Shown here piece by piece: positions 6,487-58,546 of a stretch of DNA of 64,000 nucleotides (position 1 is the first letter of the stretch; every line of letters begins with the position of its first letter). The notes under the pieces are model-generated. The model was not told the origin of the DNA. It was given only the letters and a program-made list of their open reading frames with translations, and ran no database searches. This stretch comes from Paragordius varius (taxonomy: Eukaryota > Animalia > Nematomorpha). The stretch is taken from the NCBI GenBank assembly GCA_964247055.1, contig OZ176055.1, forward strand, positions 4,402,001 to 4,466,000. The letters are read 5' to 3'. A program made the translations under genes and the position numbers.

Positions 6487-9344
6487 ATGAATGAACACAA
6501 TGAAAAAGGCATTGAAGAAAATATCACTGAAATTCAAAGCTTGTGTCCATCGTGCGAAAAACAGGGAACTTCGAAATTACTACCGACCAATATTCCCTTT
6601 TATAAAGATATTGTAATTGCCAGTTTTGAATGTCCTCATTGTCATTTGCGAAATAATGAAGTAATGTTAACTGAAGATATAAAACCTTATGGGATTAGGT
6701 ATAAGTTGGAAATCATTCAAACTGAAGTAACTTATATCAATATATTATAGGATTACGATAGAATGGTGGTGAAAACGGATTATGCAACTATATATATACC
6801 GCAACTTGAACTTGAAATTCCACCCACAAAAAAATCCGGTTAACACAAATATATTTTTATTATATTTTTTAAAATAGCTTAATTTTAAGTTTGTCCGTAT
6901 AATATTCTTTTAATTATTTACTCTAGATGTGAATACGATAGAAGGTATTATTCAAAAGGTTTATGACGATTTGATGCAGGATTACGGTGAAACATTTAAA
7001 CAAATAGCGCCTGAGAAACCTGAGGTGGATGAACAATCAAAACAAATAATTAGTTTGAAAAATTTTACTGATACTTTGTGTAAACTTTTAACGGAAAAGC
7101 CGACATCCAACATAACGCTTCTGTTAGATGACCCTTCCGGTAACAGTTTTGTCGAAAACCCAAATGCCCCAAACTCAGATGCTAATTTATCCATTATTCA
7201 TTATGACCGAACCAATGAACAAAATATCGCGTTGGGTTTTTCGAATGTAATATAAATATAATTTTTTACATGTTGAGAATCCCGAATTCACAATGATAAA
7301 AAATGGTTAACATACATCGAAATTTGATAAACTTTCGTTAATACTTATTTTTTAAAAAGAATAGATGCGATTACTTAATATACATAGCTATGCATTTTTC
7401 CACTTGATAATAATATTTGAAATTTATAATTTTAATGTCAATTATTTTTCTCCATAAATACCATTAATATTGCCTTTTTAATTTTGAAAAATTCACATCA
7501 GTAAAGATTTCTTTAAAAAAATAAGTATTCTAATATAATTAAAATTTTAGATTGAAGATCAAACATCAGCTGATGCTAATAAACCAATTACAACAAAAGT
7601 TCCTGATTTTCAAAGTGAACAAGAATTTAATGCCACCAGTGAGGTTTTTATATAATTTTAATTTTATTAATTCTTATTTGATACTGATTCTTTTTTATAG
7701 GTTTTACAATTTCCAGGTCATTGTAGTGCTTGTCAATTCCCCTGCGTTACAAATATGAAAATTGTCGGTAAATATTAATAAAATTTAATTTGGAGTTTGC
7801 TTTAGGGATTGAGAGTGAAAGCGTTTTTAACCATTAGTATTAGTTTGGAATGGTGTTACAATAAACGGTTACAAATATAATTCAAATTTTTATTTTTCCA
7901 ATTTCAATACATTGTTTATTTTAATGTCATCACCATCATTTAATGAAATTTTCTTCTGATTAAATTAAGAAATTTTAAAGTCAGAATAAACACATCAATT
8001 GAGGTTTCATGTTTTGGAACCATTTTTTTATGAAACCATAAATATGTGAAACCCAAACAAAAAATGGATTTTGTTTCGATACCTGTTTTTATAAAATTTT
8101 ATCTAACACTAATATAGATATTCCCCATTTTCACGAGCTTATTATCATGTCGAGCTTGTGTGATAAATGTGGTAATCGATCCACTGAAATCAAACCTGGT
8201 GGTGGCATCAATGATATGGGTTGTCGTATCGAATTAAAGCTATGTAATTCACAAGACCTTAAACGAGAACTTATTAAAGTTTATTTATAACATACATATC
8301 TCACTTTTTCAACTATTATGATCTAATATTTTTAAAATTTAAATAATTTAATATTTTATAAAATTGAAGATTTTACATATATAATTTCGGATTTAATTTA
8401 CCATATGATCCATACATAAGCAAATTTATATCGACTTATTAATGTATTTTCCTAAGACAACTATTTTTTTAATTAAATGTGTAAAAGGTTATAAAGTAAA
8501 GACATAATAGGTGTAGATTGGATTCAAAATTGGTGTTTTAGAGTTTCTTTTCAGCAGGATTAAATCCTCACTTGTAGGGAAAATTATTCAAATACACGAC
8601 TGACGCACGTATTATCTTATTAGTTTTGTATTTTTTGTTTAACCATGGGTTTTAAATATGGGCATGCATAATTGCTACTTTTAGCGATAAATTATTAATT
8701 TTTATATCTATCTAGTCTGATTATTGTGAAATATATATACCTGAATTCGATATACATTTATCACCAACTACACTGGGTGCCAAATATACAACTGTTGAAG
8801 GCTTCCTTAGAGATATGATAGAACAAGTAGAACTTTAATTATGATTTTTTTATGAAAATACCCCTTGATGAAGTCCATCAATTATTGTGATAAAATTCTA
8901 AATATTTTTTGTCGTTAAATTTAGCTCAAGGAAGCCAATCCATTTGTACAAGGGGATTCAAGTCTTAGTCCACAATCCGCCAAATTTACTCATCTCATTG
9001 ATACACTTCAACAATCTATCGATAAATTGCTTGATACAAAAAATGACAATTTATCCCAAGATAAATCACCGACAAACTCATGCACATTTACCCTTGTTTT
9101 GGATGATCCCACTGGAAATAGTTTTATAACACATACAACTCACACTAAAACTAATGATCCTCATCTCATTGGACAATATTTGGATACGAAATCAAACACG
9201 CAACAAACATCGGAACAGTCGCAGCCAGCAGAAAAATTAATTAGCGATCCTTTGAGCTCCGATGAAAATATTAAAATTACTTATTATCAAAGAACTTGGC
9301 AGCAAAATGAGGATTTGGGTATAAATGACATGAAAACGGATTAA
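6487..9344 (+). CDS. ZPR1: Zinc finger protein ZPR1, 8 exons
   Basis: Exons 6487-6726, 6751-6838, 6927-7246, 7551-7643, 7701-7767, 8118-8278, 8716-8826 and 8925-9344, all GT-AG and phase-compatible. Two C4 zinc fingers (CPSC...IPFYKDIVIASFECPHC; CSAC...IPHFHELIIMSSLCDKC), two LLDDPSGNSF/LDDPTGNSF motifs and the C-terminal YQRTWQQNEDLGINDMKTD match the ZPR1 family. Confidence 0.95.
6727..6750 (+). other. 24-nt GT-AG micro-intron (ZPR1 intron 1)
   Basis: GTAACTTATATCAATATATTATAG ends in an in-frame TAG. Removing it joins YKLEIIQTE to DYDRMVVKTD and restores the ZPR1 alignment without a gap. Confidence 0.9.
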
Positions 9345-9844
9345 TGAATATATATTAAATATCGTGCTAAAATTTAATAAATAAGGATAAATTTATTATT
9401 TGGTCTCGCGTTAAATCGAGGTTTTTTAAATTTTCCATGCCATTGGATATATTTTTATATAGTTAAATCATTATTTTTGAATCATAAAACTAATCTAGGT
9501 ATTTTAAGATCACACTTAACTGTTAAGAAATTTAGTCAATTAACACTTCATTAGCTTACTATTTCCCCTAGTTTACATATTGGGGTAGCTTTATATCCCA
9601 GAGCCTAATTTTGTAAATAAACACAGTTTTAAGAGATATTTTTGTTAAAATTTAATTATTAAACATTGTTCTCATGTATTAGGTAAAAAAGCTTATATTT
9701 TTTTACAGCTTTGTTACTTCTGCAGTCTAAAATTAGTATAGCTCCAAAGCACGATATGAACAGTTGATAATAAATATATAAACTTTTTGCTGGTAAAATG
9801 ATTGTCAGCTTTTCAAAGTTATTTATTACATTTTCCATAATATA

Positions 9845-10677
9845 TACCATTTGCACTTCAAGTTGGTCCCTGAACATTTCAAGTTGTCCTTACACTTCAA
9901 GTTGGTCCTTGAATTTCAAGTTGGTGTTTAAAATTTTTAAATTTTACCATAAATTTTAAATATATTTTTTATTTTATTTTTAACCTAATTTTCCTTATTT
10001 ATTATAAATTTATTCATTTAAAATAAAGGTTTTAGTATTCTTTCATATTCATATTATTTATACTTCATGGTTTATTGAGGCAATTTTATGCGTAACTGTC
10101 CTTGTGTACAACTAAGGATTTTACAGATTATTAGAAAACTGGCCTTTGCCGTTAGCGCATTTTCATGCCCCGGGGATGTGGCAATATATGGCGGGAATTA
10201 CTTAGTGGCCACAAAACTCCGAATCTGGAGTCCTGACCCTTACCTACCTTATAAATTAAAATTTTCATTCAAAAACCACTTTTTTTGTTTCAAACTAAAT
10301 TTTTCGGATTTGACAAAATTATTAATTTATGAATGTTTTAATGAAAATTTGTAATTAATAACCCAGAAATATTATATATTTTATAATTACATGTTAAAAT
10401 CATATTAATATGTAAAATATTTTTAAAGAAATTAATTAAGATACACTGTTTCTGAATGATTAAAGGTTGATACTGATTTAAAGTCTTTGTTAAATGAGGA
10501 AAATTTAAAAATGATAAAATAGATGAATAATACACGATTTGATTGATAAAAGTTAAAAACAAAAAAAAAGTTAATGGACCAACTTAAAGTATTCAAGGAC
10601 CAATTGAAATGTTCAAGGACCAACTTGAAGTGTTGAGGGATAAAATTGAAATGTTCAAAAACCAACTTGAAGTGCAA
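9845..10677. mobile_element. Foldback-type MITE whose terminal inverted arms carry 21-bp tandem repeats (TTCAAGTTGGTCCTTGAACAC-like), copy 1
   Basis: Arms TTGCACTTCAAG...CTTGAAGTGCAA, each with 3-5 degenerate 21-bp units. Confidence 0.7.
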
Positions 10678-10774
10678 GTATCATTTATTTGCCCGTTGCA
10701 TTAGCGATTTTGTAGGTAAAAAAGTTTTAAATGATGATTTTTTTGTAATTTATGAAAAAAATTGTATGTGTGTG

Positions 10775-12130
10775 TTATAAGCTAGTCATTAGTGACTCTT
10801 GGCTTTCTCATAATGTTCTCCATTTTTGACGATCCTGTGATTTCAACAATTGAGGAAATTTTCGGTTTGTTATTGATTTAAGCATGTCGATCCACCGCTT
10901 TTTGGGTCGGCCCCTTCTGCGGGTGCCATCTACCAAACCAAAAAGTATGCTTTTTTTCTAGCGAGTCGGATCGCAGGATATGACCCAGATTTAGCTGTTT
11001 GAAGATTATTAAATCGTGAAGTAAAAATTCGGGTTTGATGAGGTTGAGGATATAAGAATGGGAGATGTGGGCTTTCTAGGAGATTCTCAATATTTTCCGA
11101 AAGCACCACATTTGAAAAGAGTTTATGCGGGCTTTGTCAATGGATTTGCATATCCATGATTCGGACCCATAAATTGCCACTGGGTATATCATCGCTTTCA
11201 GGATGACAAGTTTGGTTGGAAATCTTATGACCACAAATTTTGGACAGTTTACCCATATTAGCACGACTTAATGCTAGCCGTGCTCGGATGTCGGGATCCG
11301 AGCTACCGTCGGATGTAATTATGGAGCCCAAATATTTACAGTGATCAGTTAGTTCGATGGTGGAGTTATTGATTGTAAATGGTAGTTGTGGAGCGTTTGG
11401 GATTATTATTTTAGATTTATCTGGGTTCAGCTTAAGACCCATCAAACTTGCTTCGATGGTAAGATTATTTAAAAGATAGGTCATGTCCGTGTGGGATTTT
11501 GACAAGAGGATGGTGTCGTCGGCGTACCGGAGATTGCAAATAGTAAGACCACCGATCCGTGCCCCCAATATGTTGGGGAAAGTTACAGTTGCGTATTAAT
11601 GTTTCTGTGTATAAGTTAGATAGGAGGGGAGAAAGGACACATCCTTGTCTCACACCTCTGAGGATAGGAAACCAGTCGGTGGGACCGAATTGGGTTTTAA
11701 TCGCAGCTGTTTCTAGAATACAGCGATTAAAGCAAGAGTATTATGTGCGGGGAAACTCCGGAGGATCGTAATATGTTCCATAGGCACTCGTGGTTGACTG
11801 TATCAAAAGCCATACTGAAGTCTGAAATGCAGCAGTATAGACTTTTCCCAAATTCATTGTATCTTCGAATTATTGTATTAAGATTAACTGTGATTAGCAG
11901 TGTTTCTCTTTACTCTAAAGTCAGCCTGCACCTCAGATATTTCAAAGTCCAGTGAGGATGAGATTTTTTTGATTATAAATCTTGAGAAGAGGTTTGGATA
12001 GTTTATTAGTGATAGCAATCATTCTATAGTTCTGACAGAGATGGGGGTTTCCCTTTTTAAAAAAAGGGTAGAAAAGATTTAATCCAATCATCCGGCCAAA
12101 TACATGTTTGAAAAACTTTTTGTAAAAGAT
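10775..12130 (-). mobile_element. 5'-truncated RTE-clade non-LTR retrotransposon (RT pseudogene), family 1
   Basis: Frameshifted RT motifs WPDDW, NYRMIA, DFSMAFDTVNH, GVRQGCVLSPLL, NLRYADD, KYLGS, IYGSESW and RRxGRPKKRWID. Confidence 0.9.
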
Positions 12131-12131
12131 C

Positions 12132-12947
12132 CCGACTGGTTTCCTATCCTCAGAGGTGTGAGACAAGGATGTGTCCTTTCTCCCCTCCTATCTAACTTAT
12201 ACATAGAAACATTAATACGCAATTGTAACCCCCAACATATTGGGGGCACGGATCGGTGGTCTTACTATTTGCAATCTCCGGTACGCCGACGACACCATTC
12301 TCTTGTCAGAATCCCACACGGACATAACCTATCTTTTAAATAATCTCACCATCGAAGCAAGTTTGATGGGTCTTAAGCTGAACCCAGATAAATCTAAAAT
12401 AATGATCCTAAACGCTCCACAACTACTATTTACAATCAATAACTCCACTATTGAACAAACTGATCACTGTAAATATTTAGGCTCCATAATTACATCCGAC
12501 GGTAACTCGGATCCCGACATCCAAGCACGGCTAGCATTACGTCGTGCTACTATGGGTAAACTGTCCAAAATTTGGAACTCGTCGGTCATAAGATTTCCAA
12601 CCAAACTTGCCATCCTGAAGGCGGTGATATACCCCGTGGCAATTTATGGGTCCGAATCATGGATATGCAAATCCATTGATAAAGCCCGCATAAACTCTTT
12701 TCAAATGTGGTGCTTTCGGAAAACATTTGGGAATCTCCTGGAAAGCCCACATCTCCAATTCTTATATACTCAACCTATCAAACCCGAATTTTTACTTCAC
12801 GATTTAATAATCTTCAAACAGCTAAAATATCTGGGTCATATCCTGCGATCCGACTCGCTAGAAAAAAGCATACTTTTTGGGTTGGTAGATGGCACCCGCA
12901 GAAGGGTCCGACCCAAAAAGCGGTGGATCGACATGCTTATATCAATT
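12132..12947 (+). mobile_element. Inverted partial duplicate of the same RTE element
   Basis: Roughly 95% identical by eye to the reverse complement of 10873-11679, and abuts the 5' end of the first copy. Confidence 0.9.
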
Positions 12948-13472
12948 TAGTAATTTATAAAAAAAATTGTATAATGCGGCAAAAAGGCTAAAGAAAGAAT
13001 ATAATAAAATTTGGCTTAATACCTTAAAAACCTTTAAGATATTCCAGATTCTTCAAATCGCTCTGGGATATGAAACTAATTTAAAAGGTAATGGAATGTT
13101 AAACTAATTCCTATTTATTAATATGTTATGTAGTAGGGAAAAAATGTAACATTGATTAACTGAGTTAACAATTAATATCTAACTCTACTACAATGGCTAA
13201 TGGATATCAGAGGTGAGAATAGGCAAAGACAAAATTAAACTAGTTTTAGCTAAAATAAAAAGTCAACATTATATTAATTGCATAAAGCGATGTTTTAACA
13301 ATTCTTCAAAATAATGATCAACATTTTTATTAAAAAATTAAATAAACAAAATCTCAAAATAAAAATTAATATTGCTGCATTTTTGCGTTTGTTTACAAAA
13401 GCTTTTTTTAGAGATGTCCCAAAATTTGAGAAATTTGGAGCATACATCTGAAAATAAAATTTTATCAAAATA

Positions 13473-15438
13473 TACCATTTGCTCTTCAAGAGTGTCCTTG
13501 AACACTTCAAGTTTGTCCATGAACACTCAAGTTGGTTCTTGAACACTTAGAGTTGGTCCTTTGACTTTTTTGATTTGTTTTTAACTTTTATCAATCAAAT
13601 CGCATATCATTCATCATTTTATCGTTTTTAACCTATTTATTACATTGCACAACAAGGTTTTGCACCACGCCATTTTTTTGAATTTTCTGTTACCTAATGG
13701 CATGGAAAGGCCAAAACAAAATAATTTGAGGCCACCAATCGGATTTTTTTAAATTTAATTTTAAATTTTGTATTTAATATAAAAAACAATTACTCCTCGT
13801 GTTCATATATTTAAATATTTAAACGAGCAAGTCATACAAGTGGTATTCCAAAGCTAGGTTTTTCATTATAATTTTAGAACGAAAATGCAAAAATGAGCCA
13901 AATATACCAGCCTCAGTATACGATACTACAGAAGATTTTTTATTAACGAAGACTCTACAGAAAATGTTATTGATGATCCATATAATAAAACTTTATAAAA
14001 ATGCGTCGATCTTTATATTAGAATATAAACTGCCCAAAATTGCTACGAAGGTTTGTTATCTCTTTTGCACGAGAGATACGTCTTATCAAGCGGGTTTGTT
14101 ATTCGACATAGAAATAGACAATATCATTTATTGAATATATAATTAAAAATTCTATGTGATTGCTAAGAGCGAGAGATATTAAAAATCTAAAAGGGCTAAT
14201 GTATGGTATGGTGTTATAGATCCGGGCGGCTTGCACAAGCTTTACAAAAATCCTTAAGCATCCTATAATTATGCCAGATATGGCAAAGGGTATACAATGA
14301 GGTCGTCGTAGAACCCGGTAGGAGAGACCAGCAGATAATATAACGTAGTTAACTTCAGCATAATCCAGGGAAGTACACATGTCAAATAAACCAATTCACA
14401 GAATAGAGTTAAACAAATTTGACCATTAAATCGGATAAGAATATTAGATAAGTTCAAGTGGTCATATTCAGTAAAAAATTATGGTAGAATATCCATAATT
14501 CAGGTAATAAAAGTGGCTGCCCAACATCCATCTGTTAAAATTATACCGCATCCAATTATTTTCAAAATAAATAATATCCACTAGTTATAATAACAGGATA
14601 GTAAGAATCAACCGAAGAGAAAAACCCTAAAAAACTAAAAATAACCAAAACTAACAAAATAAATATAGCCTATCTGAAAGCGGATAATTAAATAACAAAG
14701 TGCCTCTTAGTATTTTTTTATATAAATTTATACGTGTTTAAAATTAGCTTAAAACTAAATTTCAACGTTTATACCCGTACTATCTATTTAATCCCTGATA
14801 TTGACATATTTATAACTAAAAGATAGAGTTTAAAACGCTTAATTAAATGATACCGATTTTATAATATAATAACTTTTTATATAAAGTTATTTGATTTTCT
14901 GTAAGTTAAAAAACCTGTAATATCTCTGAATTTTGATTGGGATTGGCGGGATGGGAATTTTTTCCAGATTCGGTTTAAAACACTGAAATCAGTTTAAATT
15001 CAAAAATTTGAGTGATGGTGCTCGAAAAACCAAATTTGTTGGCTAGTGTTATTTACGATAAATATAAACTAATATAAACTTTTGTTGAGAAACAGTATAT
15101 CTTTTTAATTAATTAAAATTCGGATATTTATAAGATTTTAATATGTAATTAAAAAAAAGTTTTTGGGTTATTATTTAAAATTCATTGACAACATATTAAA
15201 ATTAAAACGTTAAAATAGAAAAAAAATAGTCTGAACTAAAAAAGTGATTTTTGAACAAAAATATTTATTTTAACTAAATAAATATATTATAAATAAAGGA
15301 AATTAGGTTAAAAAATAAAATAAAAAATACATGCAAAAATTATGGTTAAATCAAATGTTAAACATTTTAAGGACCAACTCACAGTGTTCAAGGACCAACT
15401 TAAAGTGTTCAAGGACACTCTTGAAGTGCAAAGGGCAT
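13473..15438. mobile_element. Same foldback MITE, copy 2, opposite orientation, interrupted by a Tc1-like element
   Basis: 13484-13630 is the reverse complement of 10505-10677, and 15285-15435 is the reverse complement of 9845-10010. Internal sequence is also shared. Confidence 0.7.
13643..15048. mobile_element. Non-autonomous Tc1/mariner-like element, copy 1, with hydrophobic ORF-like cargo
   Basis: Left end TA|CATTGCACAACAAGG and right end TTGTTGGCTAGTG. Colinear with 23464-24579. Confidence 0.65.
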
Positions 15439-15982
15439 AATGTTTTTTTTGAAATAAAGCATTTGGCTTTCACCAAAAAACTTTATTTACATAATGAGCG
15501 CAGGTTTTTTAATATTGAGGAAATAAAAGACGACAACTTTCTTAAATCATTTGTAAGGCCCAAAACCCATAGCGCCATGAAAATACTGAAACATGCATCA
15601 TATCCAAATATATATAATTTATCAGGTTATAATTTTATACTCCCCGATTTTGCTGTGTTGTGTCGACTGCATCAAAACTAAACGCATTAGTATAATTCTG
15701 ATACATTTGTTTACCATTTAATCGCAATTTACATTAAAATAGCTAAAATCTCTTAAAACAAACCTGAAGGTGAAAAACAAATATCTGTAATTGATTGGAA
15801 GATGATAGGCAGAATAAGCAAAAGATTTTGAATTGTGTTAATATTTTAATGGATCGATTCAATATATCAATCCAAAACCGTATGATTCGCCTCACTAGAA
15901 GTTTTTAATATTTAATTTTGAAAGCAAAAGCGGCGATAAGTAATATATTTTTTGATTATATATCGAACATAGCACAATTTAA

Positions 15983-16537: not shown

Positions 16538-16717
16538 TTTAATATAATAAGATTACCTTATGCTTGCAATAACGTTTTATATTTATTTGTAATTTATGTC
16601 AATTTACTATTCAAAAAATATATTAATTACGATTTATAAGAATATTTATAAAGCGCAGTTGTAAAATTCAGCATGTTTTTCATTTTCGCATTCTCACATT
16701 TTAAAATTTAGCGCGAC

Positions 16718-19700
16718 ATGCCTGTTTTATCCAAAGAACTTATAGCACATTTTAAAACCGACAATTTGTATAAAATATTTAGCCTCAATCCCAGCGCAAA
16801 ACCAGGGGAAAGTATTTTTATTTTTAAATATCTAGTTAAAAAAGCTTATTATCAACTATCTCTTAAATATCACCCCGACAAAGTTAAGGGTAACAAGAGC
16901 AATACAACTCTCAAATTTCAACTAATATCTAATGTGTATGAAATATTAAGTGATCAAGAAAAACGACAGTTATACGATCAAACTGGTGAAATTAATGATA
17001 ACCCTCAAAATTCAGATATTAAAGATTGGTTAAATTATTGGAGACTATTGTTTCAAAAAGTTACAACCGAAGACATTCGTAATTTTGAAAAAGAATATAA
17101 AGGTAATATTTTTATACCTAATTTTTTGAAATTTTATTTTTATTGTGAAGGGCGCAACCGAGTATTTAAAGACTTTCCTCGGTTTAGCCCCACTCAGCGG
17201 TACAATACAAAAATTTAATACATATTTTGGCAAAAGTGTACTCATTAGCCACTTAAATTTTATTTAAATTCGCGTATAGCAAATTAAGTTTTGGAATTTT
17301 TAGGGTTCAATGCAACTTCTTTAAATATTGTGTATAGAGATTTGCTATTTCTAGAGGGAGCCGGCAAAAGAAACGTTAACTTTGAACAATATAACTTAAA
17401 TAATTTTAGATGTTTGCGACCCCCTTGTTTAATCTCACTCCCGATAATGGTAGAAATAATAAAATTCAGCTGTCCCTCACCATAAAAATAACGGGTTGAA
17501 CATAAATCTTTTGTCTCACGGACCGTTAAAATATAATACCGATCACATATGCAAATACTTATAATCTTAATCAGCACACCGTGATTTTTGGGCACGCATA
17601 TAAATCGCAGCTAAAATTACTTGTTTATTAAAAATAAAAATAATTTTAACAATACATCTTTTAACAAATAAGTAGACATATTTTAATAATAAACAACTAT
17701 TTTGACCTTAAATATCGTGACAGGCCAATCTAAAAATGACATTTTCTTTTTACAAATTTCAAATATGCACTTCGGCCTGATATAAAGGTAATACAGTATG
17801 GATAACTTAAGCACCATTTGGCACATCTCACCTAACAATATACTCATGCAATTTTTTCGCTAAAAATTATCAGAATCGATAAAATCAACAAGATGGGCCA
17901 TGACAAAAACCGATTTGCCCATATCAAAAAAAAACCAGAATTTCTTCGCATTAAATTAATTATAATAGGTGACCAACAAAATAGCGAAAAAAAATAAAAC
18001 TGGAATTTACAAATTAAACATTCAAATCAGTTAAAAATTTTTATGTATGATCTCTACGCAATTCTTGAAAAATATTAATTTAATAATATAGGGTGAATCT
18101 CCCAATAGTTAAGCGGTCATAAACCTTGACGTGAAGGGAACAAAATTCGTTACATACCCTGAATATCTCTCATCTATGAATTTTATGCTCTTATTTAAGA
18201 TGATTTACCGTATTTTTAAATTAGGATCTAGATTTTGCTTAATTTTAAGGATAGATTTTTTTTAAAGGGTTTTAAAGGCGTAAGCTTCTATTTATAAAAT
18301 AATTTAATAAGATCCAAATAAATTAATAATAATTGGAAGATATGATTTTGTATTGATGGTAATAAATATTACCCTTAAAATATCAGAACCGCGGGTCGTG
18401 CGTCCCTATCATACAATTTTATCATTAATCTAATGTAGATTAGAAATAATTCTTATTTATTACAAATATTAATATTCACAGCAAAGTATAAGCCGCTAGT
18501 ATTTTATAAGAATCAGCCGTGGGAATTTAGATTGGTGTGATTTTTAGCACACTAAGTTTTATTTCAGAGATTATTTTACGATACAACTTATAAGTGTCGT
18601 TTATGCAAAGTTATGACAAGATAAATACCCCAAGTATTTCATATACAGCTAAGTGCATAATTACAAAAATATTGGGCATTATTCCATTATTTAGCAGTCA
18701 ATATTTATGCTTGAGTGCTTAGATTGTGATTGCCTATGAATATTTTTTTTTTCAATATTTAAATAAAATATTGTATTCAGTTGTTACTTTACACTGCCAA
18801 TTTCACTGTTATCTAGATTATGCATAATATATTTTTGAAAGAGTGTTGTTTATCTAAAAATATTATTTGATATAAATCATGGGTCATTATCCCTCATCTT
18901 TTTCATTCTACACGTTAATCGTACTTTCAAATATATTTTCTAATTTAAAAATTGCCATATGTTATATGCCCCACTATGAACCTAGTCGGATTGTAGCAAA
19001 GCCCATTAACATTTTTACAATATTTCATTTCACATATAAAAATATGTAAATATTATTATAGGATTAAAAATTCAGAACAGCCATTATTATTTGATTGTCT
19101 TTCTATAAAATTTATAAAGTTGCTTAATAATTTTTCTGACGTATATATTACCAATTTTTCATGGGTTTTGATAGATTTATTTCATCATAGGAATTGATAT
19201 TTTATTGCATAAATTGATGTAATTAGGCAACAAATTAATTTTCGAACGGCAAATTTCAAATCATCGCGTTTTTACTTAATCACAGCCACGCATAGCGGTC
19301 CTCTATCAAACTATCAAATTTTCAATTATTGGATTATAATTATCAAATTCCCTTTAGGTTCTGAACAAGAAAAGTTTGATGTTTTATCAGCATACACTAA
19401 GTTCAAAGGCGATATGACAACAATCATAGATAATGTTATGTGCGCTAGCCAATTAAATGCCGATGATGAGAAAAGATTTCGTACCATAATTGACGAAGAA
19501 ATTGAAAAACAGAATGTGCCAATATATAAAGCATACAAATCCGATAATTCAATCAAGCGATCTAAGATTAAGAAAAAGGTTATTTTGTTTTTGAATTGAT
19601 TACTAATTTAACATCTATTTTATATAAGTTGTTAGGTTAGGAACGGAACTGTTTTTGGTTCCATATGAAATGCGGTTTCAGTAAATTTGTATGCAAAAAT

Positions 19701-21001
19701 TAGTTTTCTGATTCATTTTTTCGGTAATGGTTTATTTTGTTTAAATTTACAGAGGTCTTAATTGTAGCCATATTTTAATTATATACAAACAATTTATTAC
19801 GCTAAATAAGTCTTAACCGTTCCGAAGTTTTACTTTAAACACGGTTTTCAATCTATATATATGGATTTTTTGGTTCAAAACTGTTTCAAAAAAGCTAATT
19901 TGTTTTCGTGTAATCCCTGATTTTTCTATTTAAATTGGCAATCTTCCGCAAATTAACGCAAACGTTTAGCGAATGTAAGATTTTACAGAAAATATGTAAA
20001 TCTTTTTTATACAAAATACTACTTAGGCTGAAAAAGAGGCACGCGAAGCCGAAGAATATGCCAAAGAAATTTTATCGGAAAAAGAACAAAGCCTTTTGAC
20101 TAAAACAAAATCGACGCATTGTAATGGGAATGGCCCACAAAATGATAATGATTCAGCCTTGGTGACTTTAATTCAAAATCGCAAAGCACAACGGGATGCT
20201 AAGGCTGACACTTTTCTCAACAATTTGGAGGAAAAATATTGTGTTAGCAGTAAAAATAAAGCAGGAAAAAAACCGACGACCAAAGTATCGAAAAAAACGA
20301 TTTCCGAAACCGGTAAAAATTTTAATTTTTGATAGTAACCAAGTTTATAATGTTTTTTATATAGTTTATATAAATAACTTATTGCTCCTTTTGAAAAAAA
20401 TTAATTTATATATTATACCTAAGTTTATTGTTGTTCATATTTTTTATTTAATAAAAATTGGTTGCATTTTAAATAATTACATATTATATGCCATATAATA
20501 TATGACAAAGTTATAATTTATTCTGGTAAAAAATAATAGAGGAATAAAAAAAATGTTTTTAAGTTGACTAACCCAATAATATTTATTATATTTTTTAGGC
20601 GGGTCGGGGAATACTCAAAAGAGTTCACCAAAAAACAAGCCACAAAAGGTAATTAAAACTTGGTTTTAAAACACAGTTTAAAGATAATTTTGCGAATTTT
20701 TAATACTACTTATATAACAAGAAAAAGGTTACAAAAGACGAACCAATTGTGCTTGAAAAGCAGAATGGGCATCAGGATCAGACTGAGAATACCAAAGGTG
20801 CAAGGACAAAACGTAAGGTCTTACCGGATTCCGATGAAAGTAAGAGTTATTTAATTTTTCATTGTTATCAATTTTTGATGAATTAAAATAATTTTTGTTA
20901 TCTATTTAGAGCTCTCCAATGATATTGTTAAAACCAAAGTTACTACCAAAAAAATAAAAACCCCTCCACCCAAACGTGAATTGAGAGAACGCAATAAATA
21001 A
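16718..21001 (+). CDS. DNAJC9: DnaJ homolog subfamily C member 9 (J domain, histone co-chaperone family) with a basic C-terminal extension
   Basis: Exons 16718-16811, 16836-17102, 19358-19578, 20027-20312, 20599-20648, about 20722-20839 and 20910-21001. J domain with HPD (YHPDKV), then [31 protein letters not shown], KGDM and FLNNLEEKY, as in DNAJC9. The last three exons are less certain. Confidence 0.9.
16812..16835 (+). other. 24-nt GT-AG micro-intron (DNAJC9 intron 1), in frame and stop-free
   Basis: GTATTTTTATTTTTAAATATCTAG. Splicing changes GESIFIFKYLVKKAY into the canonical J-domain GEIKKAY. Confidence 0.8.
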
Positions 21002-21734: not shown

Positions 21735-24700
21735 TTATTTATCAGCAGGTACAAGAAAAATCCGGTGTTTTGCATGAATAAATGTTACGATGCCTTGATA
21801 AGATGTTCGAGCCGAGCCTCCCTAAAATGAATAAACTTTTCTATTGTATAGTGTAAAAATTAAAATCATAAAGACACATCCAAAAACTAAAAGACAAGTT
21901 TTTTATAAAGACCATACTCATTGATACATTTCTTTCTTTTAAATAACCTATATGATTATACTATTCATTTATTTTGCAACTCAAAACGATAATTTATTTA
22001 AAAAATCAAGGTTTAAAAGACATGGTTGTCTTTTTTAGAAAAATTTTTTTTTCTCTTTAAAATTCAATTTTTATGGTAAATCTACCGTAAATAAACATTT
22101 TATAGTAATTATAAAGCAAGTTCAATTTTCATACCAAAGTTTATATCGTAAGAAGCTAACTATTTTTTTATTTATTCGAAGATTACTTAAAAATAGGTGG
22201 ACCTAAATAAATTGTTATAGTTTCAAAATAGGATTTGTAAGCCATATAAATTATTTTAATATATTTAAATATTATACTCTTATATCCGACATTAAACCAA
22301 ATCGATCAGCCAACGATTGAAATTCTTCTTTAGTGTTGTAGCTAATTTTCAAATCCGGTTTTTGAAGCTCATTATACAGAGGTATATTATTTTTTGAAGT
22401 ATATTTATTATTATCATCACTAAATTCATTTATTACGGGTAAAGGCTTTAATGGATTATTTTTTAGGAATAGTTCGAGATCATCAATAATTTCGGCTTGG
22501 GATATATTACTCATCAATTGTTTATCATATTCATCCTAATATTGATATTTTTTAATTATAAATTTGTATATATGGGTAAAGGAATATACTTTTATCAAAG
22601 CTAAAAGCTGTGATTCCCATTGCTTTATGTCTTGATTTGGGTTAGATTGATTGGTCCAAACGTCTCGAAAAACTGGTCTAATAAGTTTAACATCCAATAA
22701 TAAAGATAATAGGGACAAATTTATTGAAAAAAATATATTAAAATTAATTTCATTAAAAATAAAAATCAGCTTATTAAGTAAATTATGAAATTAGCCAAAA
22801 AATAAATGGTCAAAAAAGTGATATAATCACAACATAGTTTTAAATAAATCATCAAACTACAATGCCGTTAAAATAATGATTATAAATTTACTTGATATAT
22901 GGAGTTTAGCATATCAAATTTGGAAAAACTTCACATTTTTTATAATATGAATGTGAAGAATGATTCATTACAGTGCAAAAAAATTTAAGATTTTTAATTT
23001 CCATACAATCTTTTTCAAATCAAAATGAAATCAGAAAAATTCATTTTGTAAGCCATGAATGATGCAATTTTTTTGTGTATGAATAAATACCTTTGATTGA
23101 GGACAGTGTGTGCTAAATGGGTGTTATAGAACTCACCATTGCTCGTCCCACTACGACCAAAAGTAAAAGTACGTGACAATTCTGGTCTGATGCAAACTCT
23201 ATTTTGACGCACATCAGCTGATCGCATCCAATCATCCCAAAAGGCAGCGGGCCATTCCAAAGAAAGCTGCGTGCGCCATACTTCGCCGGGTAATAACCAA
23301 CCCAACCCGGGGAAAAAGTCGGTTCGGTATAAAAGACCTAAGTAAAGTTAAATTAAGAGTTAAGAAATTGTTGTGAAATGTTAGTAATATAAACCATTTC
23401 ATCTTGGTTAGCTAAACAGATAAAAGCTGGCTAAAGAATAAATTTAAACTTATGATATCATTACACTGCTCAACAAGGTTTTGCACCACCCCATTATTTT
23501 TGCATTTTCTAATACACAAAAAAGAAAATTGAGGCCACCAATAGGATTTTTCCAAAATTTAATTTTTAAATTTGTATTTAATTCAAAAATAACAATCATC
23601 CCTCGTGCACATATGTTTAAATATTCAAACGAGCAAGTCGATACAAGTAATATTCCATGCATGGATAACAAATTCTAGGCATTAAATAAGATACTAAACA
23701 AGCTAAGAGCCAAATTATTAAAAATCTAAATGGGGCTTATGTATAGTGTGATAGATCCGGGCGGCTGCACAAGCTCTGCATATCCCCCAAGCGATCCTAT
23801 AATTATGCCATATGTGGCAAAGATAACAATAAGTAATCGTAAAGTCCAATAAGAGAGACTTGCAAGCAAAATCCAGGCAAATTGACATGTCAAATTAACC
23901 AATTTACTGAATAAAGATAGATAAATTCTACAATTAAATTGAATATAAATTAGGTAAATATAAATGGTCCAATCCCATAACAGTAAATTCTACTAAAAGT
24001 GGCTACACAACATCCATCTGAAATTCAAAATACAAAACAACCAATAATTTTTACAAAAATAAGGTATATCCACTAGGTATAAATAAAGGATTTATAAGAA
24101 CCAACTCAAGAGAAAAAGTATAATAAGTACTTAAAAGAACGAAAACTAACAAAAAATATAGCCTATCTGAAAGCCGAAGGTTTAAACCATAAAATGCCTT
24201 TTTTAGTATTTTTTTAAAAAATTTTTATATGTGTTAAAAATTCACTTGAAAAAAAAAGACTAAATTTTGACATTTAAGTCCGTACTATTTTTTTCTCTCT
24301 GATATTTAAATGACATATTTATATTCAAAAGATAGAGTTTAAAACGCTTTATTAAATGATATTAAGTTTATAATATAATAACATTTTATTATAAAGTAAT
24401 ATTCAATTTTCTCTCGATTTTCTCTTGTTTTTGAAAAATTAAAAAACCTATAAAATTTCAAAATTCTGATTGGCTGGATCAAAAATTTTTTTAAATTCTG
24501 TTTTAAAACACTGAAATTAGTCATAATTTAAAAAGTTTGAGGGGTGGTGCTTAAAAATGTCCAAATTTGTCGACTAGTGTTATTAATAAAATAATTTACA
24601 TAAGTTTAATTATTTAATTGTAAGTAATCAAAAGTAAACCATATTCAATATTTAGTTGTTTAAAATATAAAGGAGGAAAATATGTTTGCATCTATTCCGC

Positions 24701-26364
24701 TTTCCTTTTTAAACGTTGTAAAACAAAATAAAATGGAGTAATTTAAACACATTATTAAGGAAATCTTATTTACTGGCTATTAAGATTCAAGTATAATTAT
24801 TTAAAATTTTTATACACCAAAAACAGCTAACAAAGCGAAGGAAAATAGATATGATACTCGTGTCAAGCATATGGTCATAAAATATAAAGAACTAATCAAT
24901 ACCTTTAATTTATTATTTGATGTAATGAACAAAATAATATTTGTAAGAAATGTCCAAAAAAAGAATAAAAAACAGGGGCATTTTATGGATAGTGTATATA
25001 AAACTTGAGGACAATCTTGGTAAGTGTAAAATATGCACATTTGGTTTATTAAAATGCGAGAATTTTTTTTAAAAATTTTAGTGAAACATAATTTTCCAGA
25101 TTTCATATAAAAATTATGTGGTAATAATTAGGTAAATAACATAAGCGTATGGTTAATAATCGATTATGTTACGATAAAATGGAGAAGTATGATGAAATCA
25201 TGTATAAATTAATAAATAATTTACTTAAGGGATTCATAAATATATGCTAAGTAAAATAACACTAGACAAAAAATTCCCTCAAGTTTTCTGCATTTTCTGA
25301 TATTTACTATCCTTTTATGAGTATATCTGAAATAAAAATTATAATTCCACCTAAGAATTTTGTAAAATATGATATTTGTGAATATGCACCCTCTTTATCA
25401 AAATTTTTCTAAAAAATGGTTTTCTTTGAAAACATACAATAAATGCCCATTTGTAATATATCATTCGAAAGAGTAATGAGAACTTTATAAAATGCATACA
25501 ATTATGTTTTACATCGATTGTTAATATTGGACATAGGAAGCGCGACAAATCCGCGAAACGAGAGCGTTCCTTTTAAGGATAAAAATAGCTCAAACTCCGT
25601 CTAGATGGTACAATGAAAGTCCAAAAAAGAAACAAAAGAAAGTTGTTTGATTAAAAAATTATTTATTGCTTTTATGTCATTCAAACAGTTATTTTTAAGT
25701 TTTTTGTTTTTTAAAAGTTACCATCTCATCTAATTTATATACTTTAGAAAACTTATAATTTCGAAATTTCAACGACTTAAAACAAAGTTTAAGGTCTTTT
25801 TTTAGTTTTTTAGGATTATGTAATAAATTTACAGTTATAACTATGCATTTCAGCATCCACTAGGTAAAATCATTTTGATAATGATAATCGTCATTGAAAA
25901 GGAGGACCAAAAGCTTTTTCAAATATTTTTTTTTAATTTTTACTAATCTAACCCTAATAATTATATAAAATAATTTATATGATTTTTAAATTGGTTTGTC
26001 TGTGAAATTCTTTGACTTATTTAAGGGTTGAATTTTGACAATATAAACCCAAATAACTTTTAAATCAGATTGATTTAAATGACTAACTACCATAGATACA
26101 CTTCGCGCTCGAATGATATAAAATACATGGCTCTATGTTAATTTTAAAAATTACGAGTTTAATGTTAAATCGGGGCCAATTAACGATAAAACCTTATAAA
26201 AAAAATTTAGATTTTAGACCAATTAATTTTTCAGATATACTATTCATGTATTTTAATGTTATAAACTTTAAATTTGCAAGAATGTTAAAAAAAGTCATTA
26301 TTATCTAGTGTAATGAATTGTATTGAAATTTTTTTATAAGTATTACTATGCTATATTGCTAAAT

Positions 26365-26403
<39 letters not shown>

Positions 26404-29400
26404 CAAAATTGAGAGAATACGCCTTATGTGTTAATTTATTTAAAATTAAGCTAAAATGCGTATTATAAATATATAATTTTTAATATTTATTATTAAAAAG
26501 CCAGTACACAACAATCTTGATGGTACTGGTTTTTCCATCAATATTACCAATATCACACTATATATATCATATTATTTCGTTATAATTCATTTTATCAAGA
26601 ATTTTCTTCAATAAAAGTCGAAAATTAAATTATTTTTATTTATTATTATTATGCATTCTAGCTTAGTTTTAAATAATTTACATAATATATATAATACCTT
26701 TTTATTAAAATTAGGCTTTTTACTTTATTCGGTAATTTTTTAAAACTATATTATAAAATTTTGAAAACTGGGTATCGTTAATATATATAAAAATTGATGA
26801 ATTGAACATTATAATTGAGCTAATTACATAATATTTTTATACATTCTTATTGAGTGCAAACCATTGCATTAACATTTGTATATATTTTAAAATCATTTTA
26901 GTATTTTATATGCATATTTTAATCATACTTCTCTATTTTATCGTATTATACTCTATTGTTAACCATACGGTTCTGTTATTTATCTAATTAGTACCATGAA
27001 AAGATTCATAATTTTTATCAGAAATCTGGGAAATTATGTGTCACTAATATTTTTAAACTTTCCATAGCTATATTAGAAACCAAATGCGCACATTTTATTT
27101 ACATTGATTGTTCCCAAGTTTTGTATATACATATCCATATCATCTCCCTGTTTTTTAAAAAATACGAATTTTTAATTCTTTTTTGGACTAACATTGTTTT
27201 ATGCAATACGCTACTATATATATATATATATATATAAAGAAAAACAAACTAGGATCATTGATTGTAAGGTTTGGTAAAGCATTATCATTCCATGCTGAAA
27301 TACACCATATACTCGGGTCAGCTTTCAGGATTGGATATGTTGCAAGAAAGTAGTCAAAAAAATCAGGAGATATATCAAAATCATCTAGATATAAAATATA
27401 AAAATAATTATGCATAAATAAATTCATTCATTTAAGTCAAAGGTTAAGAAGTGATTTTAGTTGCTAAATAAAAAAGGAGGGATTGGAAACCCGTTTTTAG
27501 GACCAGTAAAATAAATTATTTTACATAATTTGGAGTAATTGCAAATAAATAAAAAATACGGTTTCAAAACTCTATTGACTTTTATGATTCTTTGGCTTCA
27601 TTTTCTTAATTTTAATTAGTTTAATTGGATACTTCAATAACTTATTAAAAGAAATTAACCAATTCCCATTTTTATGCACAGTGGTCAATACAATGTATTC
27701 TTGATAATTTAAAAAACATAAAGCAATTTCGGTTTTGGTAAACACTAATAAAAGATTTACTATTTACCTTCAACAATAATTACGGCATCGTGCCTTTTGA
27801 GATCAAGTATGTAATTGAGTCCAAACTTATAATGAGCCGCTATTTTGTAATAACCCCACATAGATTGAGATATTTCAGTATATGGATCATATTTTTGAGG
27901 TGTGTGCTAAAATTTACATTTGTAAATAATTATAATTTTACCTGTTAACAATTAGAATTATAACGATAAAAACTCAAGGACAAATATTTTTTTAATATGA
28001 GACAACCATATTTCTTAAACCTAAATTTGTTTTATTAACTTATCGTTTTGGGTTCCAAAATACGGCTTTGAGATGTAAATTCATAATTTTATTTTAAAAA
28101 TGTAATTATATTTATGTAGAAGAAATGAGGTTAAAGTATAGCTCTCATAAAAACGTTTTTTAGAGATTACGTTTTGTCTTTATAATATTAATATTTACTG
28201 TTAATGATATGATATTTTTTAACAAAAAGTAGTTAAATAATAATATTTACCTTTAAAATGTTTACAACGTTTTTGTAGGGTTTTAAAATGCGTTCCAAAT
28301 CAGCATCAGGACACCCCAAGCTTATATAAATAGGAAAGCGTTTGGTAGACGGCCTTAGCCTATATGGGAGAATATAAGTTATCATGAAATAATTTTAAAC
28401 ATAAAATTAAATGAAAAGAAAATAAAGCGAATAAAAATTTTTTTATGGAAAGTTTTTATATTGATAAAAAACAGAAAGTAACGAACACAAAAAAGGAAAA
28501 CAATTTAATAATATCACCAATTAATTACTAATAATATTACAAATATGTTTTTTAGTGTCATTTCTAATTTAGTTTTTGCTTTTATATTTTTGTTTTATTT
28601 TACTTTTGAGAGAGATTATGTAGTACACGAAAGTTGATGTTCTAAATAAGTTTTATTCTTGCTGAATTTAAATAATATCAAATAATATAATATAAACAAA
28701 ATATGCAAATAATGCTATCATTTTTTTTAAGGATTAATTTTATAAACTATATTAGGATATTTTATTCCCAAGCTTTCAAGCGCCCAAAACAAATGGCTTC
28801 GCGGGCAGGATATGTGTCTCAAAAAACCGACGGGCCGCATTCGAAAAAGGATATAAACACAAAAAACCGAAAGAATCTATAAAATCCAAAAATAATTGGT
28901 TTAAAAAAATTAATTTATCCCTTTACCGGACAATCAATTGTGTTGAGAAAACGATCGAAACCATAAATATAATTTTTCTGATCAAATCAATACATGAACA
29001 GACAAAAAAAATTTTCATGGGAAAAACAATATTAATTTTAGTATTCAATTTCCATAATACAATATTTTTGCAAACTATATATCTTAATTTTGTTTATTGC
29101 AAATTTTTGCAGAGAGCCAGAAAATATATTTTTTGATATTTTTATAGTGATTTAACCAAAAGATGTAAATAATATTGGGCGAAAAGTTTGATGTCAGAAT
29201 TTTTACTATCACACATTTATGATTTTTTTAAAAAATTGATGCCCCTATAAGGCCATAGAAAGCATATTTTAAATTTTGGCTTAATATCATATTTATAAGT
29301 CATTTATATTTGTGGGGACCAAAACTACAAAGATAATGAAGTGTTGGGTGATGTTATGCATTTTTTATATGAAATTGGGAGACTTCTGTAAAATTTAAAC

Positions 29401-30835
29401 AGGTAATAGTTGCACAATTTAATTTAAATCAAAAGTTTTACATATATATATATATATATATAACATTTGCCTAAAAAATTTATAATATTTTACTCATTGA
29501 TATTTATAAAAAGCACCTTACCCAACTTTTTTGATACAATTTTCGAATATTATCCATAGCTATCGCTTTACAGATATTATATATTTTTAAGCCTCTAATT
29601 TATAAAATTTACTAACAATAATGACAAAATAGTTAAATTCATCATAATTTTGTATTAAATTCGTGTCGATATCAAAGTTCATGCCTTAAGTTAAACCTTT
29701 AAAATAATAAAAAAAATAATTAAGATTTATTTATATCATGCTTTACTGAATACAAATTATTTCACATGTCCTTTGATATTTGGGGACAGTGACAACCTCG
29801 GACCTGTTAAAATCAAATTTATAAAATATGGATATATTAAAAATACATTTCTTAAGTTTGCACATATATAGCATGGATGCACCAAAATAAAAAAATCACC
29901 CAAAATGACTTGATGTTTTTTATGATTTGACTTAAAGGCACAAACCTTTAAGAATTAAATGAGTGCAAGAGCTAAAATAAAAAATAGCGCTAATCCGGCT
30001 TTTAGTATTTTTTATATAAGGTGTTTATAAAAAATAAAATCAAATTTTTTAAAAAAAATTAGGTTCAAAAAAATTTAAGCGTTAAAATAGTAATATGTAA
30101 CTTTTTGCCCAAAACAAAATTATCTTTTTAGTTATTCTGAATAGAGGTATAAATATATTATAAGACCGCTCGTTTAAGTAGTTTTTAAATAATTGTTTTA
30201 GAGTTAATCTGGGGTATCCATTTACCCCAATTTGATCCAAAGTTTAAATGATATAATTTATTTTTAATTTACATAAATTTTAAAATTCGTTATAGCGTGG
30301 GGTATAAAAACACCAATGTATGCATCAAAGACCATAGGTAAAGATTTTTATTATATTTTACGAAAATTGAGGCATCGAAAGTCGTTAAAGCTTCATACAA
30401 TAAGGACGGCCTGATATAATATAATGTATAACTTACAGTAAATGCTTTTTTCTTTGATTTAATGGGTTATAATTACATTAATTAAAATTATTCGCAACCT
30501 TATTAGTTGTGACAATGTCCTTAAAATGGTTTCACGGTCGCACGCGAATATTAGAATCGGCAATATTTCAGGTACAGCAGGTAAAAACGTGATTTTATCA
30601 TTTAATGAAGAGGAAAAATTTATTCGCAATATCTCATTTTTTATTTTGGCCTGTAAATCCAATTGTATGTTTATTTCTTGCGAAAGTTTTTCATATACAC
30701 TTGGCTAATAAATTAAATATTGATTACCAAAATTGGGTTAATTTCAACTGGCAGCGTCACAAAACGAATATAAAATAAATATAAAGTTAAAATTAGCAGA
30801 ATCCAAATGAAAGCCACCTTTCGCGCATACTGCAT
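21735..30835 (-). CDS. MGAT1: Alpha-1,3-mannosyl-glycoprotein 2-beta-N-acetylglucosaminyltransferase (GnT-I, GT13), 9 exons
   Basis: Exons 30835-30728, 30704-30499, 28359-28251, 27906-27768, 27384-27250, 23337-23091, 22677-22590, 22535-22278 and 21821-21735, with all phases consistent. N-terminal type II membrane anchor; motifs [85 protein letters not shown] and [10 protein letters not shown]. Confidence 0.93.
23464..24579. mobile_element. Non-autonomous Tc1/mariner-like element, copy 2, in MGAT1 intron 5
   Basis: Left end TA|CACTGCTCAACAA and right end TTGTCGACTAGTG, with inverted GCACCACCCC subterminal motifs. Confidence 0.65.
25581..26320 (+). repeat. Old dispersed repeat, copy 2 (empty site), in MGAT1 intron 5
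   Basis: Colinear with 898-1333 plus 1884-2210, with a single TTAA at 26021-26024. Confidence 0.8.
26366..26400. repeat. (AT)n microsatellite; others at about 27214-27237, 29441-29461 and 58515-58545, and (GT)n at about 35119-35147
   Basis: Visible directly in the sequence. Confidence 0.9.
30705..30727 (-). other. 23-nt GT-AG micro-intron (MGAT1 intron 1)
   Basis: GTAATCAATATTTAATTTATTAG. Its removal is required to put the membrane-anchor exon ([21 protein letters not shown]...) in frame with the stem and catalytic exon. Confidence 0.85.
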
Positions 30836-30912
30836 ATCAAATATTGCCACCTGGGCAAACTCATATGGACCTGAATGTATTAATTAAATGTGTTTATTAA
30901 AGTTTTTTTGCT
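30836..30912. promoter_or_regulatory. 77-bp bidirectional promoter between MGAT1 and PTPMT1
   Basis: Divergent ATGs at 30835 (-) and 30913 (+). Contains the palindrome TTGCC-acctg-GGCAA (30844-30858). Function is inferred from position only. Confidence 0.6.
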
Positions 30913-31495
30913 ATGCTCCAAAAAATTTTATTCTATCCTACCTTATATTACAATGTTTTAATGGAAAAAATGAGCAACCGTCGATGGTTTGACCGGATTG
31001 ATGATTATATTGTTTTGGGAGCTTTACCATTTAAAAAACAATTAGGAGAATTATTGCGCTTAGATATTGGTGGAGTTATATCTATGAATGAATCATTTGA
31101 GTTAAAATCGTTTGTAGCCAAAAAGGAGGTACAATTTAATATAATCAAAAGTAGGATTGGAACAAAAATGATGTTAAATACCTAAACCTCCCGACAAGCG
31201 ATTTTATTGGTTCTCTCTCTTTACCACAAATATTACAGGGCTTGTCTTTTATCGAGAAAATAAAGCAATCATCAAAATCTGTTTATATCCATTGCAAAGC
31301 CGGAAGAAGTCGAAGCGCAACTTTAGTTGCATGCTACCTTATAAAAGTAAATTTTACATTTAATTTTAGACTTATCAATATGACCCATTCCAAGCCATTA
31401 AATTTATTAAGAATAAACGGCCCCACATACGAATTAATAAACGCAATATAGATTCTATAAATATGTATTATACAAATTATAAATCAATAAAATGA
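30913..31495 (+). CDS. PTPMT1: Mitochondrial phosphatidylglycerophosphatase / protein-tyrosine phosphatase 1, 3 exons
   Basis: Exons 30913-31128, 31155-31346 and 31370-31495. Motifs LFYPTLYYNV, RRWFDRID, VLGALPF, GVISMNE, the active site VYIHCKAGRSRSAT and KRPHIRI. Confidence 0.93.
31129..31154 (+). other. 26-nt GT-AG micro-intron (PTPMT1 intron 1)
   Basis: GTACAATTTAATATAATCAAAAGTAG. Retention shifts the frame; splicing gives KKE|DWNKNDVKYLNLPTSDF, matching the family pattern E-W-x4-V-x2-L-x-L-x-T-x-D. Confidence 0.9.
31347..31369 (+). other. 23-nt GT-AG micro-intron (PTPMT1 intron 2)
   Basis: GTAAATTTTACATTTAATTTTAG. Retention shifts the frame; splicing gives CYLIK|TYQYDPFQAIKFIKNKRPHI, the expected phosphatase C-terminal helix. 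Confidence 0.9.
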
Positions 31496-31822
31496 GATCT
31501 TTGTTGCATTACTGCTTTTTCATAATATTTAATATTCATTCCATCAATGCAATGTATCCATTTGGCCATAAAAATATCGCTTGATCTATCATATTCCCCT
31601 CCAACACAATATAGAGAATTGACTAGTAAATCTATTATTGAAACATATTTAGTATCTACAATCAGTTCGCAGTGGTGATTGGTGGTCCCTTTCATGACAC
31701 ATTTGTTTGGATATTCAATCTGTTTTATTCTGTAAAATTAATTGCTACTTTAACCTTCCTATAATAATGATAGATGCATCGGTTAAATTTTGATAAATAT
31801 CTTTCTCTTGCGCAAAGTACAT
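31477..31822 (-). CDS. TEN1: Probable CST complex subunit TEN1 (small OB fold, about 106 aa), 2 exons; start codon uncertain
   Basis: Exons 31822-31755 and 31729-31477. The protein IIIIGRIK...LIVDTKYV...VNSLYCVGGE...FMAKWIHCIDGMNIKYYEKAVMQQR resembles human TEN1 as recalled (TFGRL...VLVCTKLV...VGSLYIVLGE...KARVLTCVEGMNLPLLEQAIREQR). Confidence 0.75.
31730..31754 (-). other. 25-nt GT-AG micro-intron (TEN1)
   Basis: GTTAAAGTAGCAATTAATTTTACAG. Phase-2 removal restores the G-R of the first OB-fold strand. Confidence 0.78.

Positions 31823-58511: not shown

Positions 58512-58545
<34 letters not shown>

Positions 58546-58546
<1 letters not shown>

Follow-up and report, generated by a model that had tools for sequence, protein, structure and literature searches.

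Description

Animal spliceosomes have, to our knowledge, long been held unable to process introns under about 30 nucleotides (nt). Here, we report six candidate introns of 23-26 nt (micro-introns) in five conserved genes, ZPR1, DNAJC9, MGAT1, PTPMT1 and TEN1, of the horsehair worm Paragordius varius, all lying in one 64,000 nt stretch of DNA (GenBank assembly GCA_964247055.1, contig OZ176055.1, positions 4,402,001 to 4,466,000 of the forward strand; hereafter the window, with positions counted from its first nucleotide). Judged from the sequence, the six segments are very likely ordinary U2-type GT-AG introns at the shortest length that the spliceosome of this lineage accepts, about 23-26 nt, and would be removed from the RNA.

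Gene models and introns

Exon-by-exon modelling places five conserved genes between 6.4 and 32 kilobases (kb) of the window, whose G+C content is 23-35%. These are ZPR1 (6487-9344, plus strand; 8 exons, 499 amino acids (aa)), DNAJC9 (16718-20332, plus strand; 4 exons, 295 aa), MGAT1, encoding GnT-I (~21738-30835, minus strand, with the low coordinate approximate; 9 exons, 458 aa), PTPMT1 (30913-31495, plus strand; 3 exons, 177 aa) and TEN1 (31477-31822, minus strand; 2 coding exons, 106 aa). Their identities are backed by Pfam and PDB matches (Zn_ribbon_ZPR1/jr-ZPR1, DnaJ, GNT-I, DSPc and Ten1_2), and in the PDB searches the best structure for PTPMT1 is mouse PTPMT1, while TEN1 matches human TEN1. 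In the five gene models, the open reading frames (ORFs) are complete and have a single stop once six micro-introns and 15 longer GT-AG introns are removed. Intron lengths are 24, 88, 304, 57, 350, 437 and 98 nt in ZPR1, 24, 2255 and 448 nt in DNAJC9, and 23, 2139, 344, 383, 3912, 413, 54 and 456 nt in MGAT1; PTPMT1 has micro-introns of 26 and 23 nt and TEN1 one of 25 nt. The longer introns thus comprise four of 54, 57, 88 and 98 nt, eight of 304, 344, 350, 383, 413, 437, 448 and 456 nt, and three of 2139, 2255 and 3912 nt. The median of all 21 is 304 nt, and the micro-introns, at 6 of 21, are a minority, so that the median does not fall below 30 nt.

An earlier note on this DNA had proposed GT-AG introns of 24, 24, 23, 26, 23 and 25 nt in these genes, and all six segments are present at the genes, positions and lengths it gave. 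It had also placed every other intron between 54 base pairs (bp) and 3.9 kb with none of 27-53 nt, which is borne out for the 21 introns of the five genes, and had described a transposon-rich genome with kilobase introns alongside, which agrees with introns of up to 3912 nt and with fragments of long interspersed nuclear element (LINE) reverse transcriptase at 10.9-13 kb.

Three of the genes are closely packed. The start codons of MGAT1 (minus strand) and PTPMT1 (plus strand) are divergent, with 77 bp between them (30836-30912), and the two genes probably share a bidirectional promoter. PTPMT1 (plus strand) and TEN1 (minus strand) converge, and their modelled coding sequences overlap by 19 nt (31477-31495), with stops at 31495 and 31477, respectively.

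Micro-introns fixed by homology

ZPR1 intron 1 (6727-6750, plus strand; 24 nt, phase 0, GTAACT...ATAG) ends in an in-frame TAG. Residues 15-76 of exon 1 align ungapped with residues 10-71 of mouse ZPR1 (2qkd_A), which places residue 80 at 75, and exon 2 begins at 76, so that the 75 to 76 junction is gapless once the intron is removed. Pfam finds Zn_ribbon_ZPR1 in exon 1 and jr-ZPR1, from model position 2, in exon 2. The only other frame-preserving introns here, of 57 and 63 nt, were rejected because aligned residues would be lost.

DNAJC9 intron 1 (16812-16835, plus strand; 24 nt, phase 1, GTATTT...CTAG) is free of stops, and reading through it adds eight residues, SIFIFKYL, that are present in none of the five aligned homologues. 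With exon 2 the Pfam DnaJ model picks up again at its position 18, which leaves positions 1-17 to be filled by the 17 residues that precede the donor.

Both introns of PTPMT1 are micro-introns. Around intron 1 (31129-31154, plus strand; 26 nt, phase 0, GTACAA...GTAG), residues 25-65 of exon 1 align with residues 1-42 of mouse PTPMT1 (3rgo_A), which places residue 72 at 49, with exon 2 taking up the alignment at 50, giving a gapless 49 to 50 junction without the intron; left unspliced, it shifts the frame and leads to a stop after 18 codons. A 41 nt version of this intron was rejected, as five aligned residues would be lost. Exon 2 aligns to 3rgo_A 50-112 as far as its last residues, up to intron 2 (31347-31369, plus strand; 23 nt, phase 0, GTAAAT...TTAG). 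When intron 2 is read through, Pfam DSPc is matched only as far as residue 66 of 98, where the donor lies; the spliced frame continues into an RPxIxxN-type C-terminus, recognised by eye, and stops at 31495.

At all four sites (ZPR1, DNAJC9 and both in PTPMT1), the remaining frame-preserving splice pairs remove aligned residues. Four of the six junctions are, by these alignments, fixed to the residue.

Micro-introns of MGAT1 and TEN1

MGAT1 intron 1 (30705-30727, minus strand; 23 nt, phase 0, GTAATC...TTAG) connects the exon that carries the ATG and the membrane anchor (30835-30728) with the stem exon, and lies in an unconserved linker that cannot be aligned. If the intron is retained, a TAA follows four codons on, and its removal would be needed because the catalytic frame has no ATG of its own.

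TEN1 intron 1 (31730-31754, minus strand; 25 nt, phase 2, GTTAAA...ACAG) has the least support among the six. The last exon of the gene aligns to Pfam Ten1_2 over positions 47-114 and to human TEN1 over residues 49-112; as this is all that it covers of Ten1_2, sequence further upstream has to provide the N-terminal third of the fold. An exon of 68 nt with an ATG, ending ...IIIIGR, lies 25 nt away on that side and would provide it.

Splice signals, composition and position

All six micro-introns are GT-AG, five of them starting with GTA and five ending with TAG, and these signals are common to micro-introns and long introns: among all 21 introns the donors are GTA or GTT only, and the acceptor is TAG in 20. 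The splice-site motif is thus reduced to about GTa...AG, the donors sharing only GT(A/T). None of the six donors resembles the U12-type 5' motif (TATCCTT-like), so the U12 type does not apply, and the terminal dinucleotides, the restored coding sequence and the presence of an intron in a related species that agrees in position and phase are as for U2-type GT-AG introns. An A-rich, AAT/TAAT-like motif stands 7-10 nt before each acceptor, although such a motif is expected by chance at 83% A+T with six introns.

The composition of the micro-introns is non-coding: their G+C content is 16.6%, whereas exons have 33.9% (p = 4e-6) and long introns 23.9% (p = 0.04). In all six cases they are the 5'-most introns of the coding sequence, an arrangement found in 96 of 54264 placements (p = 0.0018). 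A random insert would have GT and AG at both homology-defined ends at ~0.3% per site.

When the window was scanned blindly for open frames joined across GT..AG segments of 15-70 nt, these showed no excess over control dinucleotide pairs; as the scan has no power, the case rests on homology. One of its candidates, a 23 nt GTA...TAG segment that begins where MGAT1 exon 4 has its real donor (27745-27767, minus strand), was rejected since it leads into a 56-codon frame without homology, and further candidates elsewhere in the window look like noise.

Comparison with Gordionus

The best match to DNAJC9 (47% identity) is from Gordionus sp. m RMFG-2023 (G. montsenyensis), which is the nearest relative found, and DNAJC9 and GNT-I lie tail to tail both in the window and on the Gordionus chromosome. 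Intron lengths in Gordionus were obtained by threading its annotated proteins back onto the DNA, and are 41, 43, 752 and 45 nt in DNAJC9 and 40, 41, 37, 46, 5662, 1137, 4833, 684 and 456 nt in GNT-I (isoform X1). The seven short introns (37, 40, 41, 41, 43, 45 and 46 nt) are tightly grouped and mostly 5'-proximal, kilobase introns following them; their ends read GT(A/T)...(T/A)AG, and the remaining introns measure 456-5662 nt.

DNAJC9 intron 1 stands after nucleotide 94 of the coding sequence in phase 1 in both species, with 41 nt in Gordionus and 24 nt in the window, and all three window introns of this gene coincide with Gordionus introns (41, 752 and 45 nt). The first intron of MGAT1 is in phase 0 in both species and lies in the linker between anchor and stem, where its place agrees to within ~6 residues in sequence that cannot be aligned; the micro-intron probably corresponds to the 40 nt first intron of Gordionus. 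In each corresponding pair the difference in length is 17 nt (41 vs 24 and 40 vs 23). Introns 2-5 of MGAT1 in the window match Gordionus introns 3-6 in position and phase, at a constant offset of 36 nt, and the later introns follow in the same order in both species. Orthologous introns also switch class, with 37, 46 and 45 nt in Gordionus standing against 2139, 344 and 448 nt in the window, and two short Gordionus introns have no counterpart in the window.

In RefSeq, Gordionus GNT-I intron 1 (10091-10166 of the Gordionus stretch) has an alternative acceptor that makes it 40 nt (X1) or 76 nt (X2), a difference of 12 stem residues, and intron 1 of window MGAT1 has an analogous choice, among donors giving 23, 44 or 56 nt. 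The last MGAT1 intron is 456 nt long in both species (21822-22277 in the window, 23657-24112 in Gordionus), which was set aside as coincidence, the two aligning no better than shuffles.

Orthologues of PTPMT1, TEN1 and ZPR1 were not found within 10 kb of the Gordionus DNAJC9/GNT-I locus. The Gordionus genome has 26.9% G+C, 63.8% repeats and 71.6% BUSCO completeness, and the preprint that describes it nowhere mentions introns (10.1101/2023.06.26.546503).

Other features of the window

Between ZPR1 and DNAJC9, at 10900-13000, lie two inverted copies of a LINE-type reverse-transcriptase C-terminal region that are ~90% identical and both broken (ORFs at 11137-11568, minus strand, and 12240-12950, plus strand). 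Similar short ORFs (MFRNNP.MWIILLSL...SSTRFTLV) from a repeated element occur in at least three places (34010-34240, 40844-41080 and 58361-58660), and low-complexity ORFs rich in asparagine and serine, of 137-518 aa, occupy the minus strand at 42295-46102, 51612-52965 and 55529-56542, with no conserved motif obvious by eye in their translations. A BTB/POZ fragment (62242-62870, minus strand) has an ORF that ends after matching positions 4-77 of the 110 of Pfam BTB; behind this exon, a candidate GT-AG intron of 26 nt (62396-62421) was rejected because the joined frame lacks Pfam support. Apart from the BTB gene, ORFs in the rest of the window are low-complexity, lineage-specific or repeats, so introns are not definable there by homology. 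No Rfam families were found in the window.

Interpretation and alternatives

With Gordionus introns at the corresponding places of DNAJC9 and MGAT1, the micro-introns are most likely the minimal-length introns of their lineage. Intron lengths would then form a narrow minimal-intron peak with a long tail, as in most animals, the peak lying near 24 nt here and near 40 nt in Gordionus. The likely branch site would be the TAAT-like, A-rich motif that lies 7-10 nt from the acceptor, at a predicted ~13-16 nt from the donor. That the spliceosome itself has adapted to such distances is a matter of speculation.

Several observations weigh against this interpretation. The intron sample is small, at 21 introns in five genes, and chance GT..AG segments joining open frames are plentiful in the AT-rich window. 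PTPMT1 exon 3 and TEN1 exon 1, each searched alone, have no database match. MGAT1 has donors 21 and 33 nt upstream that, with the same acceptor, give in-frame introns of 44 or 56 nt, and a TEN1 donor 6 nt downstream gives an equally possible intron of 19 nt. Among protein collections, the matches to the DNAJC9 and GNT-I searches include no proteins of this species, the TEN1 protein search gave no candidate, and exact look-ups of window ORFs returned no record. Sequencing runs labelled as RNA under the same species label contain none of the words taken from the locus. Five runs of unknown kind (X1-X5) hold 0.83, 0.69, 0.46, 0.36 and 0.29 of the words of 30400-32300; on the PTPMT1 stretch (31099-31400) the word shares are 0.20-0.67, where RNA that is spliced only would reach at most 0.60, so that DNA and RNA are not separable.

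The donor choices bear on whether some of these introns are real but of another length (44 or 56 nt in MGAT1, 19 nt in TEN1), possibly as alternative isoforms, which we consider a minor though serious possibility. These lengths come from the sole other frame-preserving, stop-free pairs at the two sites. The 56 nt version of MGAT1 gives a linker length near that of Gordionus isoform X2, just as the 23 nt version fits isoform X1, and the 19 nt version of TEN1 closes a gap of two residues in the phmmer alignment with human TEN1. However, the 23 nt MGAT1 and 25 nt TEN1 introns both fall inside the 23-26 nt range of the four homology-fixed introns, and the donor of the 23 nt MGAT1 intron (GTAATC) is of the GTA type common here, unlike the alternatives (GTGACG and GTTGAA). 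The doubt over length touches two of the six, the other four being without a viable alternative. The claim in the earlier note that these are genuine 23-26 nt spliceosomal introns is thus very probably right, most securely for the four fixed by homology, and has to allow for frame-preserving alternatives in MGAT1 and TEN1.

It is unlikely that the micro-introns are a truly separate class with a distinct mode of recognition, as opposed to the minimal end of one distribution. No lengths fall between 26 and 54 nt among the 21 introns, the micro-introns are all strictly at the 5' ends of genes, and their G+C content lies below that of the long introns, as a separate class might show; but their donor and acceptor motifs equal those of long introns, the sample is small and includes introns of 54 and 57 nt, Gordionus has the same kind of gap (46 to 456 nt) with an ordinary-looking short class, and orthologous introns change class between the two species. 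As a two-part length distribution is normal in animals, the "two separate size classes" of the earlier note should not be claimed mechanistically: the pattern is the ordinary animal one, seen alike in Gordionus at 37-46 nt, and what stands as unusual is the position of the peak, near 24 nt.

That the segments are never removed, the genes being pseudogenes or carrying small insertions or the segments being assembly artefacts, is very improbable. This would fit the lack of annotated proteins of this species for comparison and of locus words in the RNA-labelled runs, but the five conserved genes, which are unrelated to one another, show no other damage over 106-499 residues, GT and AG sit exactly at the homology-defined exon ends with all segments measuring 23-26 nt, and Gordionus has an annotated intron at the exact DNAJC9 place and probably at the MGAT1 place. 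Counted for the locus and not for the micro-intron words themselves, word matches also occur in several runs that differ in sample and species label. Excision from the DNA in place of splicing is the most improbable of all, for although the shortest internal eliminated sequences of Paramecium are of similar size and programmed DNA elimination exists in some nematodes, the segments end in GT...AG and not TA...TA (the ZPR1 segment can shift by 1 nt only, and then lacks the second TA), the GT(A/T)...TAG signals recur in the long introns of these genes, the annotation of Gordionus treats the counterparts as introns of mRNA models, and we know of no DNA-level excision system of the ciliate kind in animals.

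Implications

If the six segments are minimal-length U2-type introns, as we favour, a broader picture may follow, to which we give about an even chance: introns below 30 nt would occur in a third, independent group of animals, the horsehair worms or at least the lineage studied here, miniaturisation would be uncoupled from genome compaction and confined to the 5'-most introns, with ~17 nt of shrinkage since the split from Gordionus, and part of the reported gene loss and ~70% BUSCO completeness of Nematomorpha could be an annotation artefact. Minimal intron length could then drop without general compaction, given a relative with ~64% repeats and introns of up to 3.9 kb here, which would implicate an altered splicing machinery, or altered recognition of first introns, and not selection for a small genome. 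P. varius and Gordionus would form a tractable pair, differing by ~17 nt in minimal length, for locating the spliceosome component that sets the limit.

Introns of this size are not accepted by common gene finders or by BUSCO-type searches, so genes such as ZPR1, PTPMT1, TEN1 and MGAT1 would be scored as absent or broken, and part of the "rampant loss of universal genes" described for Nematomorpha, along with the BUSCO figure, could have this origin. Annotation pipelines would need a lower minimum intron length here, and claims of gene loss in Nematomorpha deserve a recheck.

Comparison with known short-intron systems

In most animals the minimal-intron peak lies at 50-90 nt, and in C. elegans, Drosophila and human it lies at ~47, ~61 and ~85 nt, respectively. 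These model animals share with the window a narrow peak at the shortest workable intron and a broad, long tail, but the peak here is about half the shortest of theirs and below the ~30 nt floor long assumed for animals. Our literature searches turned up no description of short introns for Nematomorpha.

According to a survey of 51 metazoan genomes, animal introns under 30 bp are known from myxobolid myxozoans and Dicyema japonicum alone; further such lineages are predicted there, and the reduction is seen as a by-product of parasite genome reduction (PMC13644364, 2026). The list of lineages with tiny introns in the earlier note leaves out the myxobolids (PMC13644364). D. japonicum, likewise a parasite, resembles the window in having GT-AG introns under 30 nt with a 5' signal of about GTa, and is described as having a pyrimidine tract that is weak or absent and a few A residues shortly before the AG (PMC13644364). 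The median Dicyema intron is this short, whereas here micro-introns make up only 6 of 21 and the median reaches 304 nt, with kilobase introns and transposon fragments alongside; a further difference is that the micro-introns here stand at the 5' ends of genes. The myxobolids (Henneguya, Thelohanellus and Myxobolus) are also parasites, with GT-AG introns of median 22-27 nt coexisting with longer ones, and are reported to have been validated by conserved positions and long RNA reads (PMC13644364). They differ in being cnidarians whose genomes are small, evolve fast and contain mainly short introns, and both dicyemids and myxobolids have a bare AG acceptor, in contrast to the T kept at -3 here (PMC13644364). 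Paramecium and other ciliates come close to the window in having AT-rich introns of ~25 nt, but are unicellular and unrelated, and nearly all of their introns are tiny (PMC5014332, 10.1101/2021.08.05.455221).

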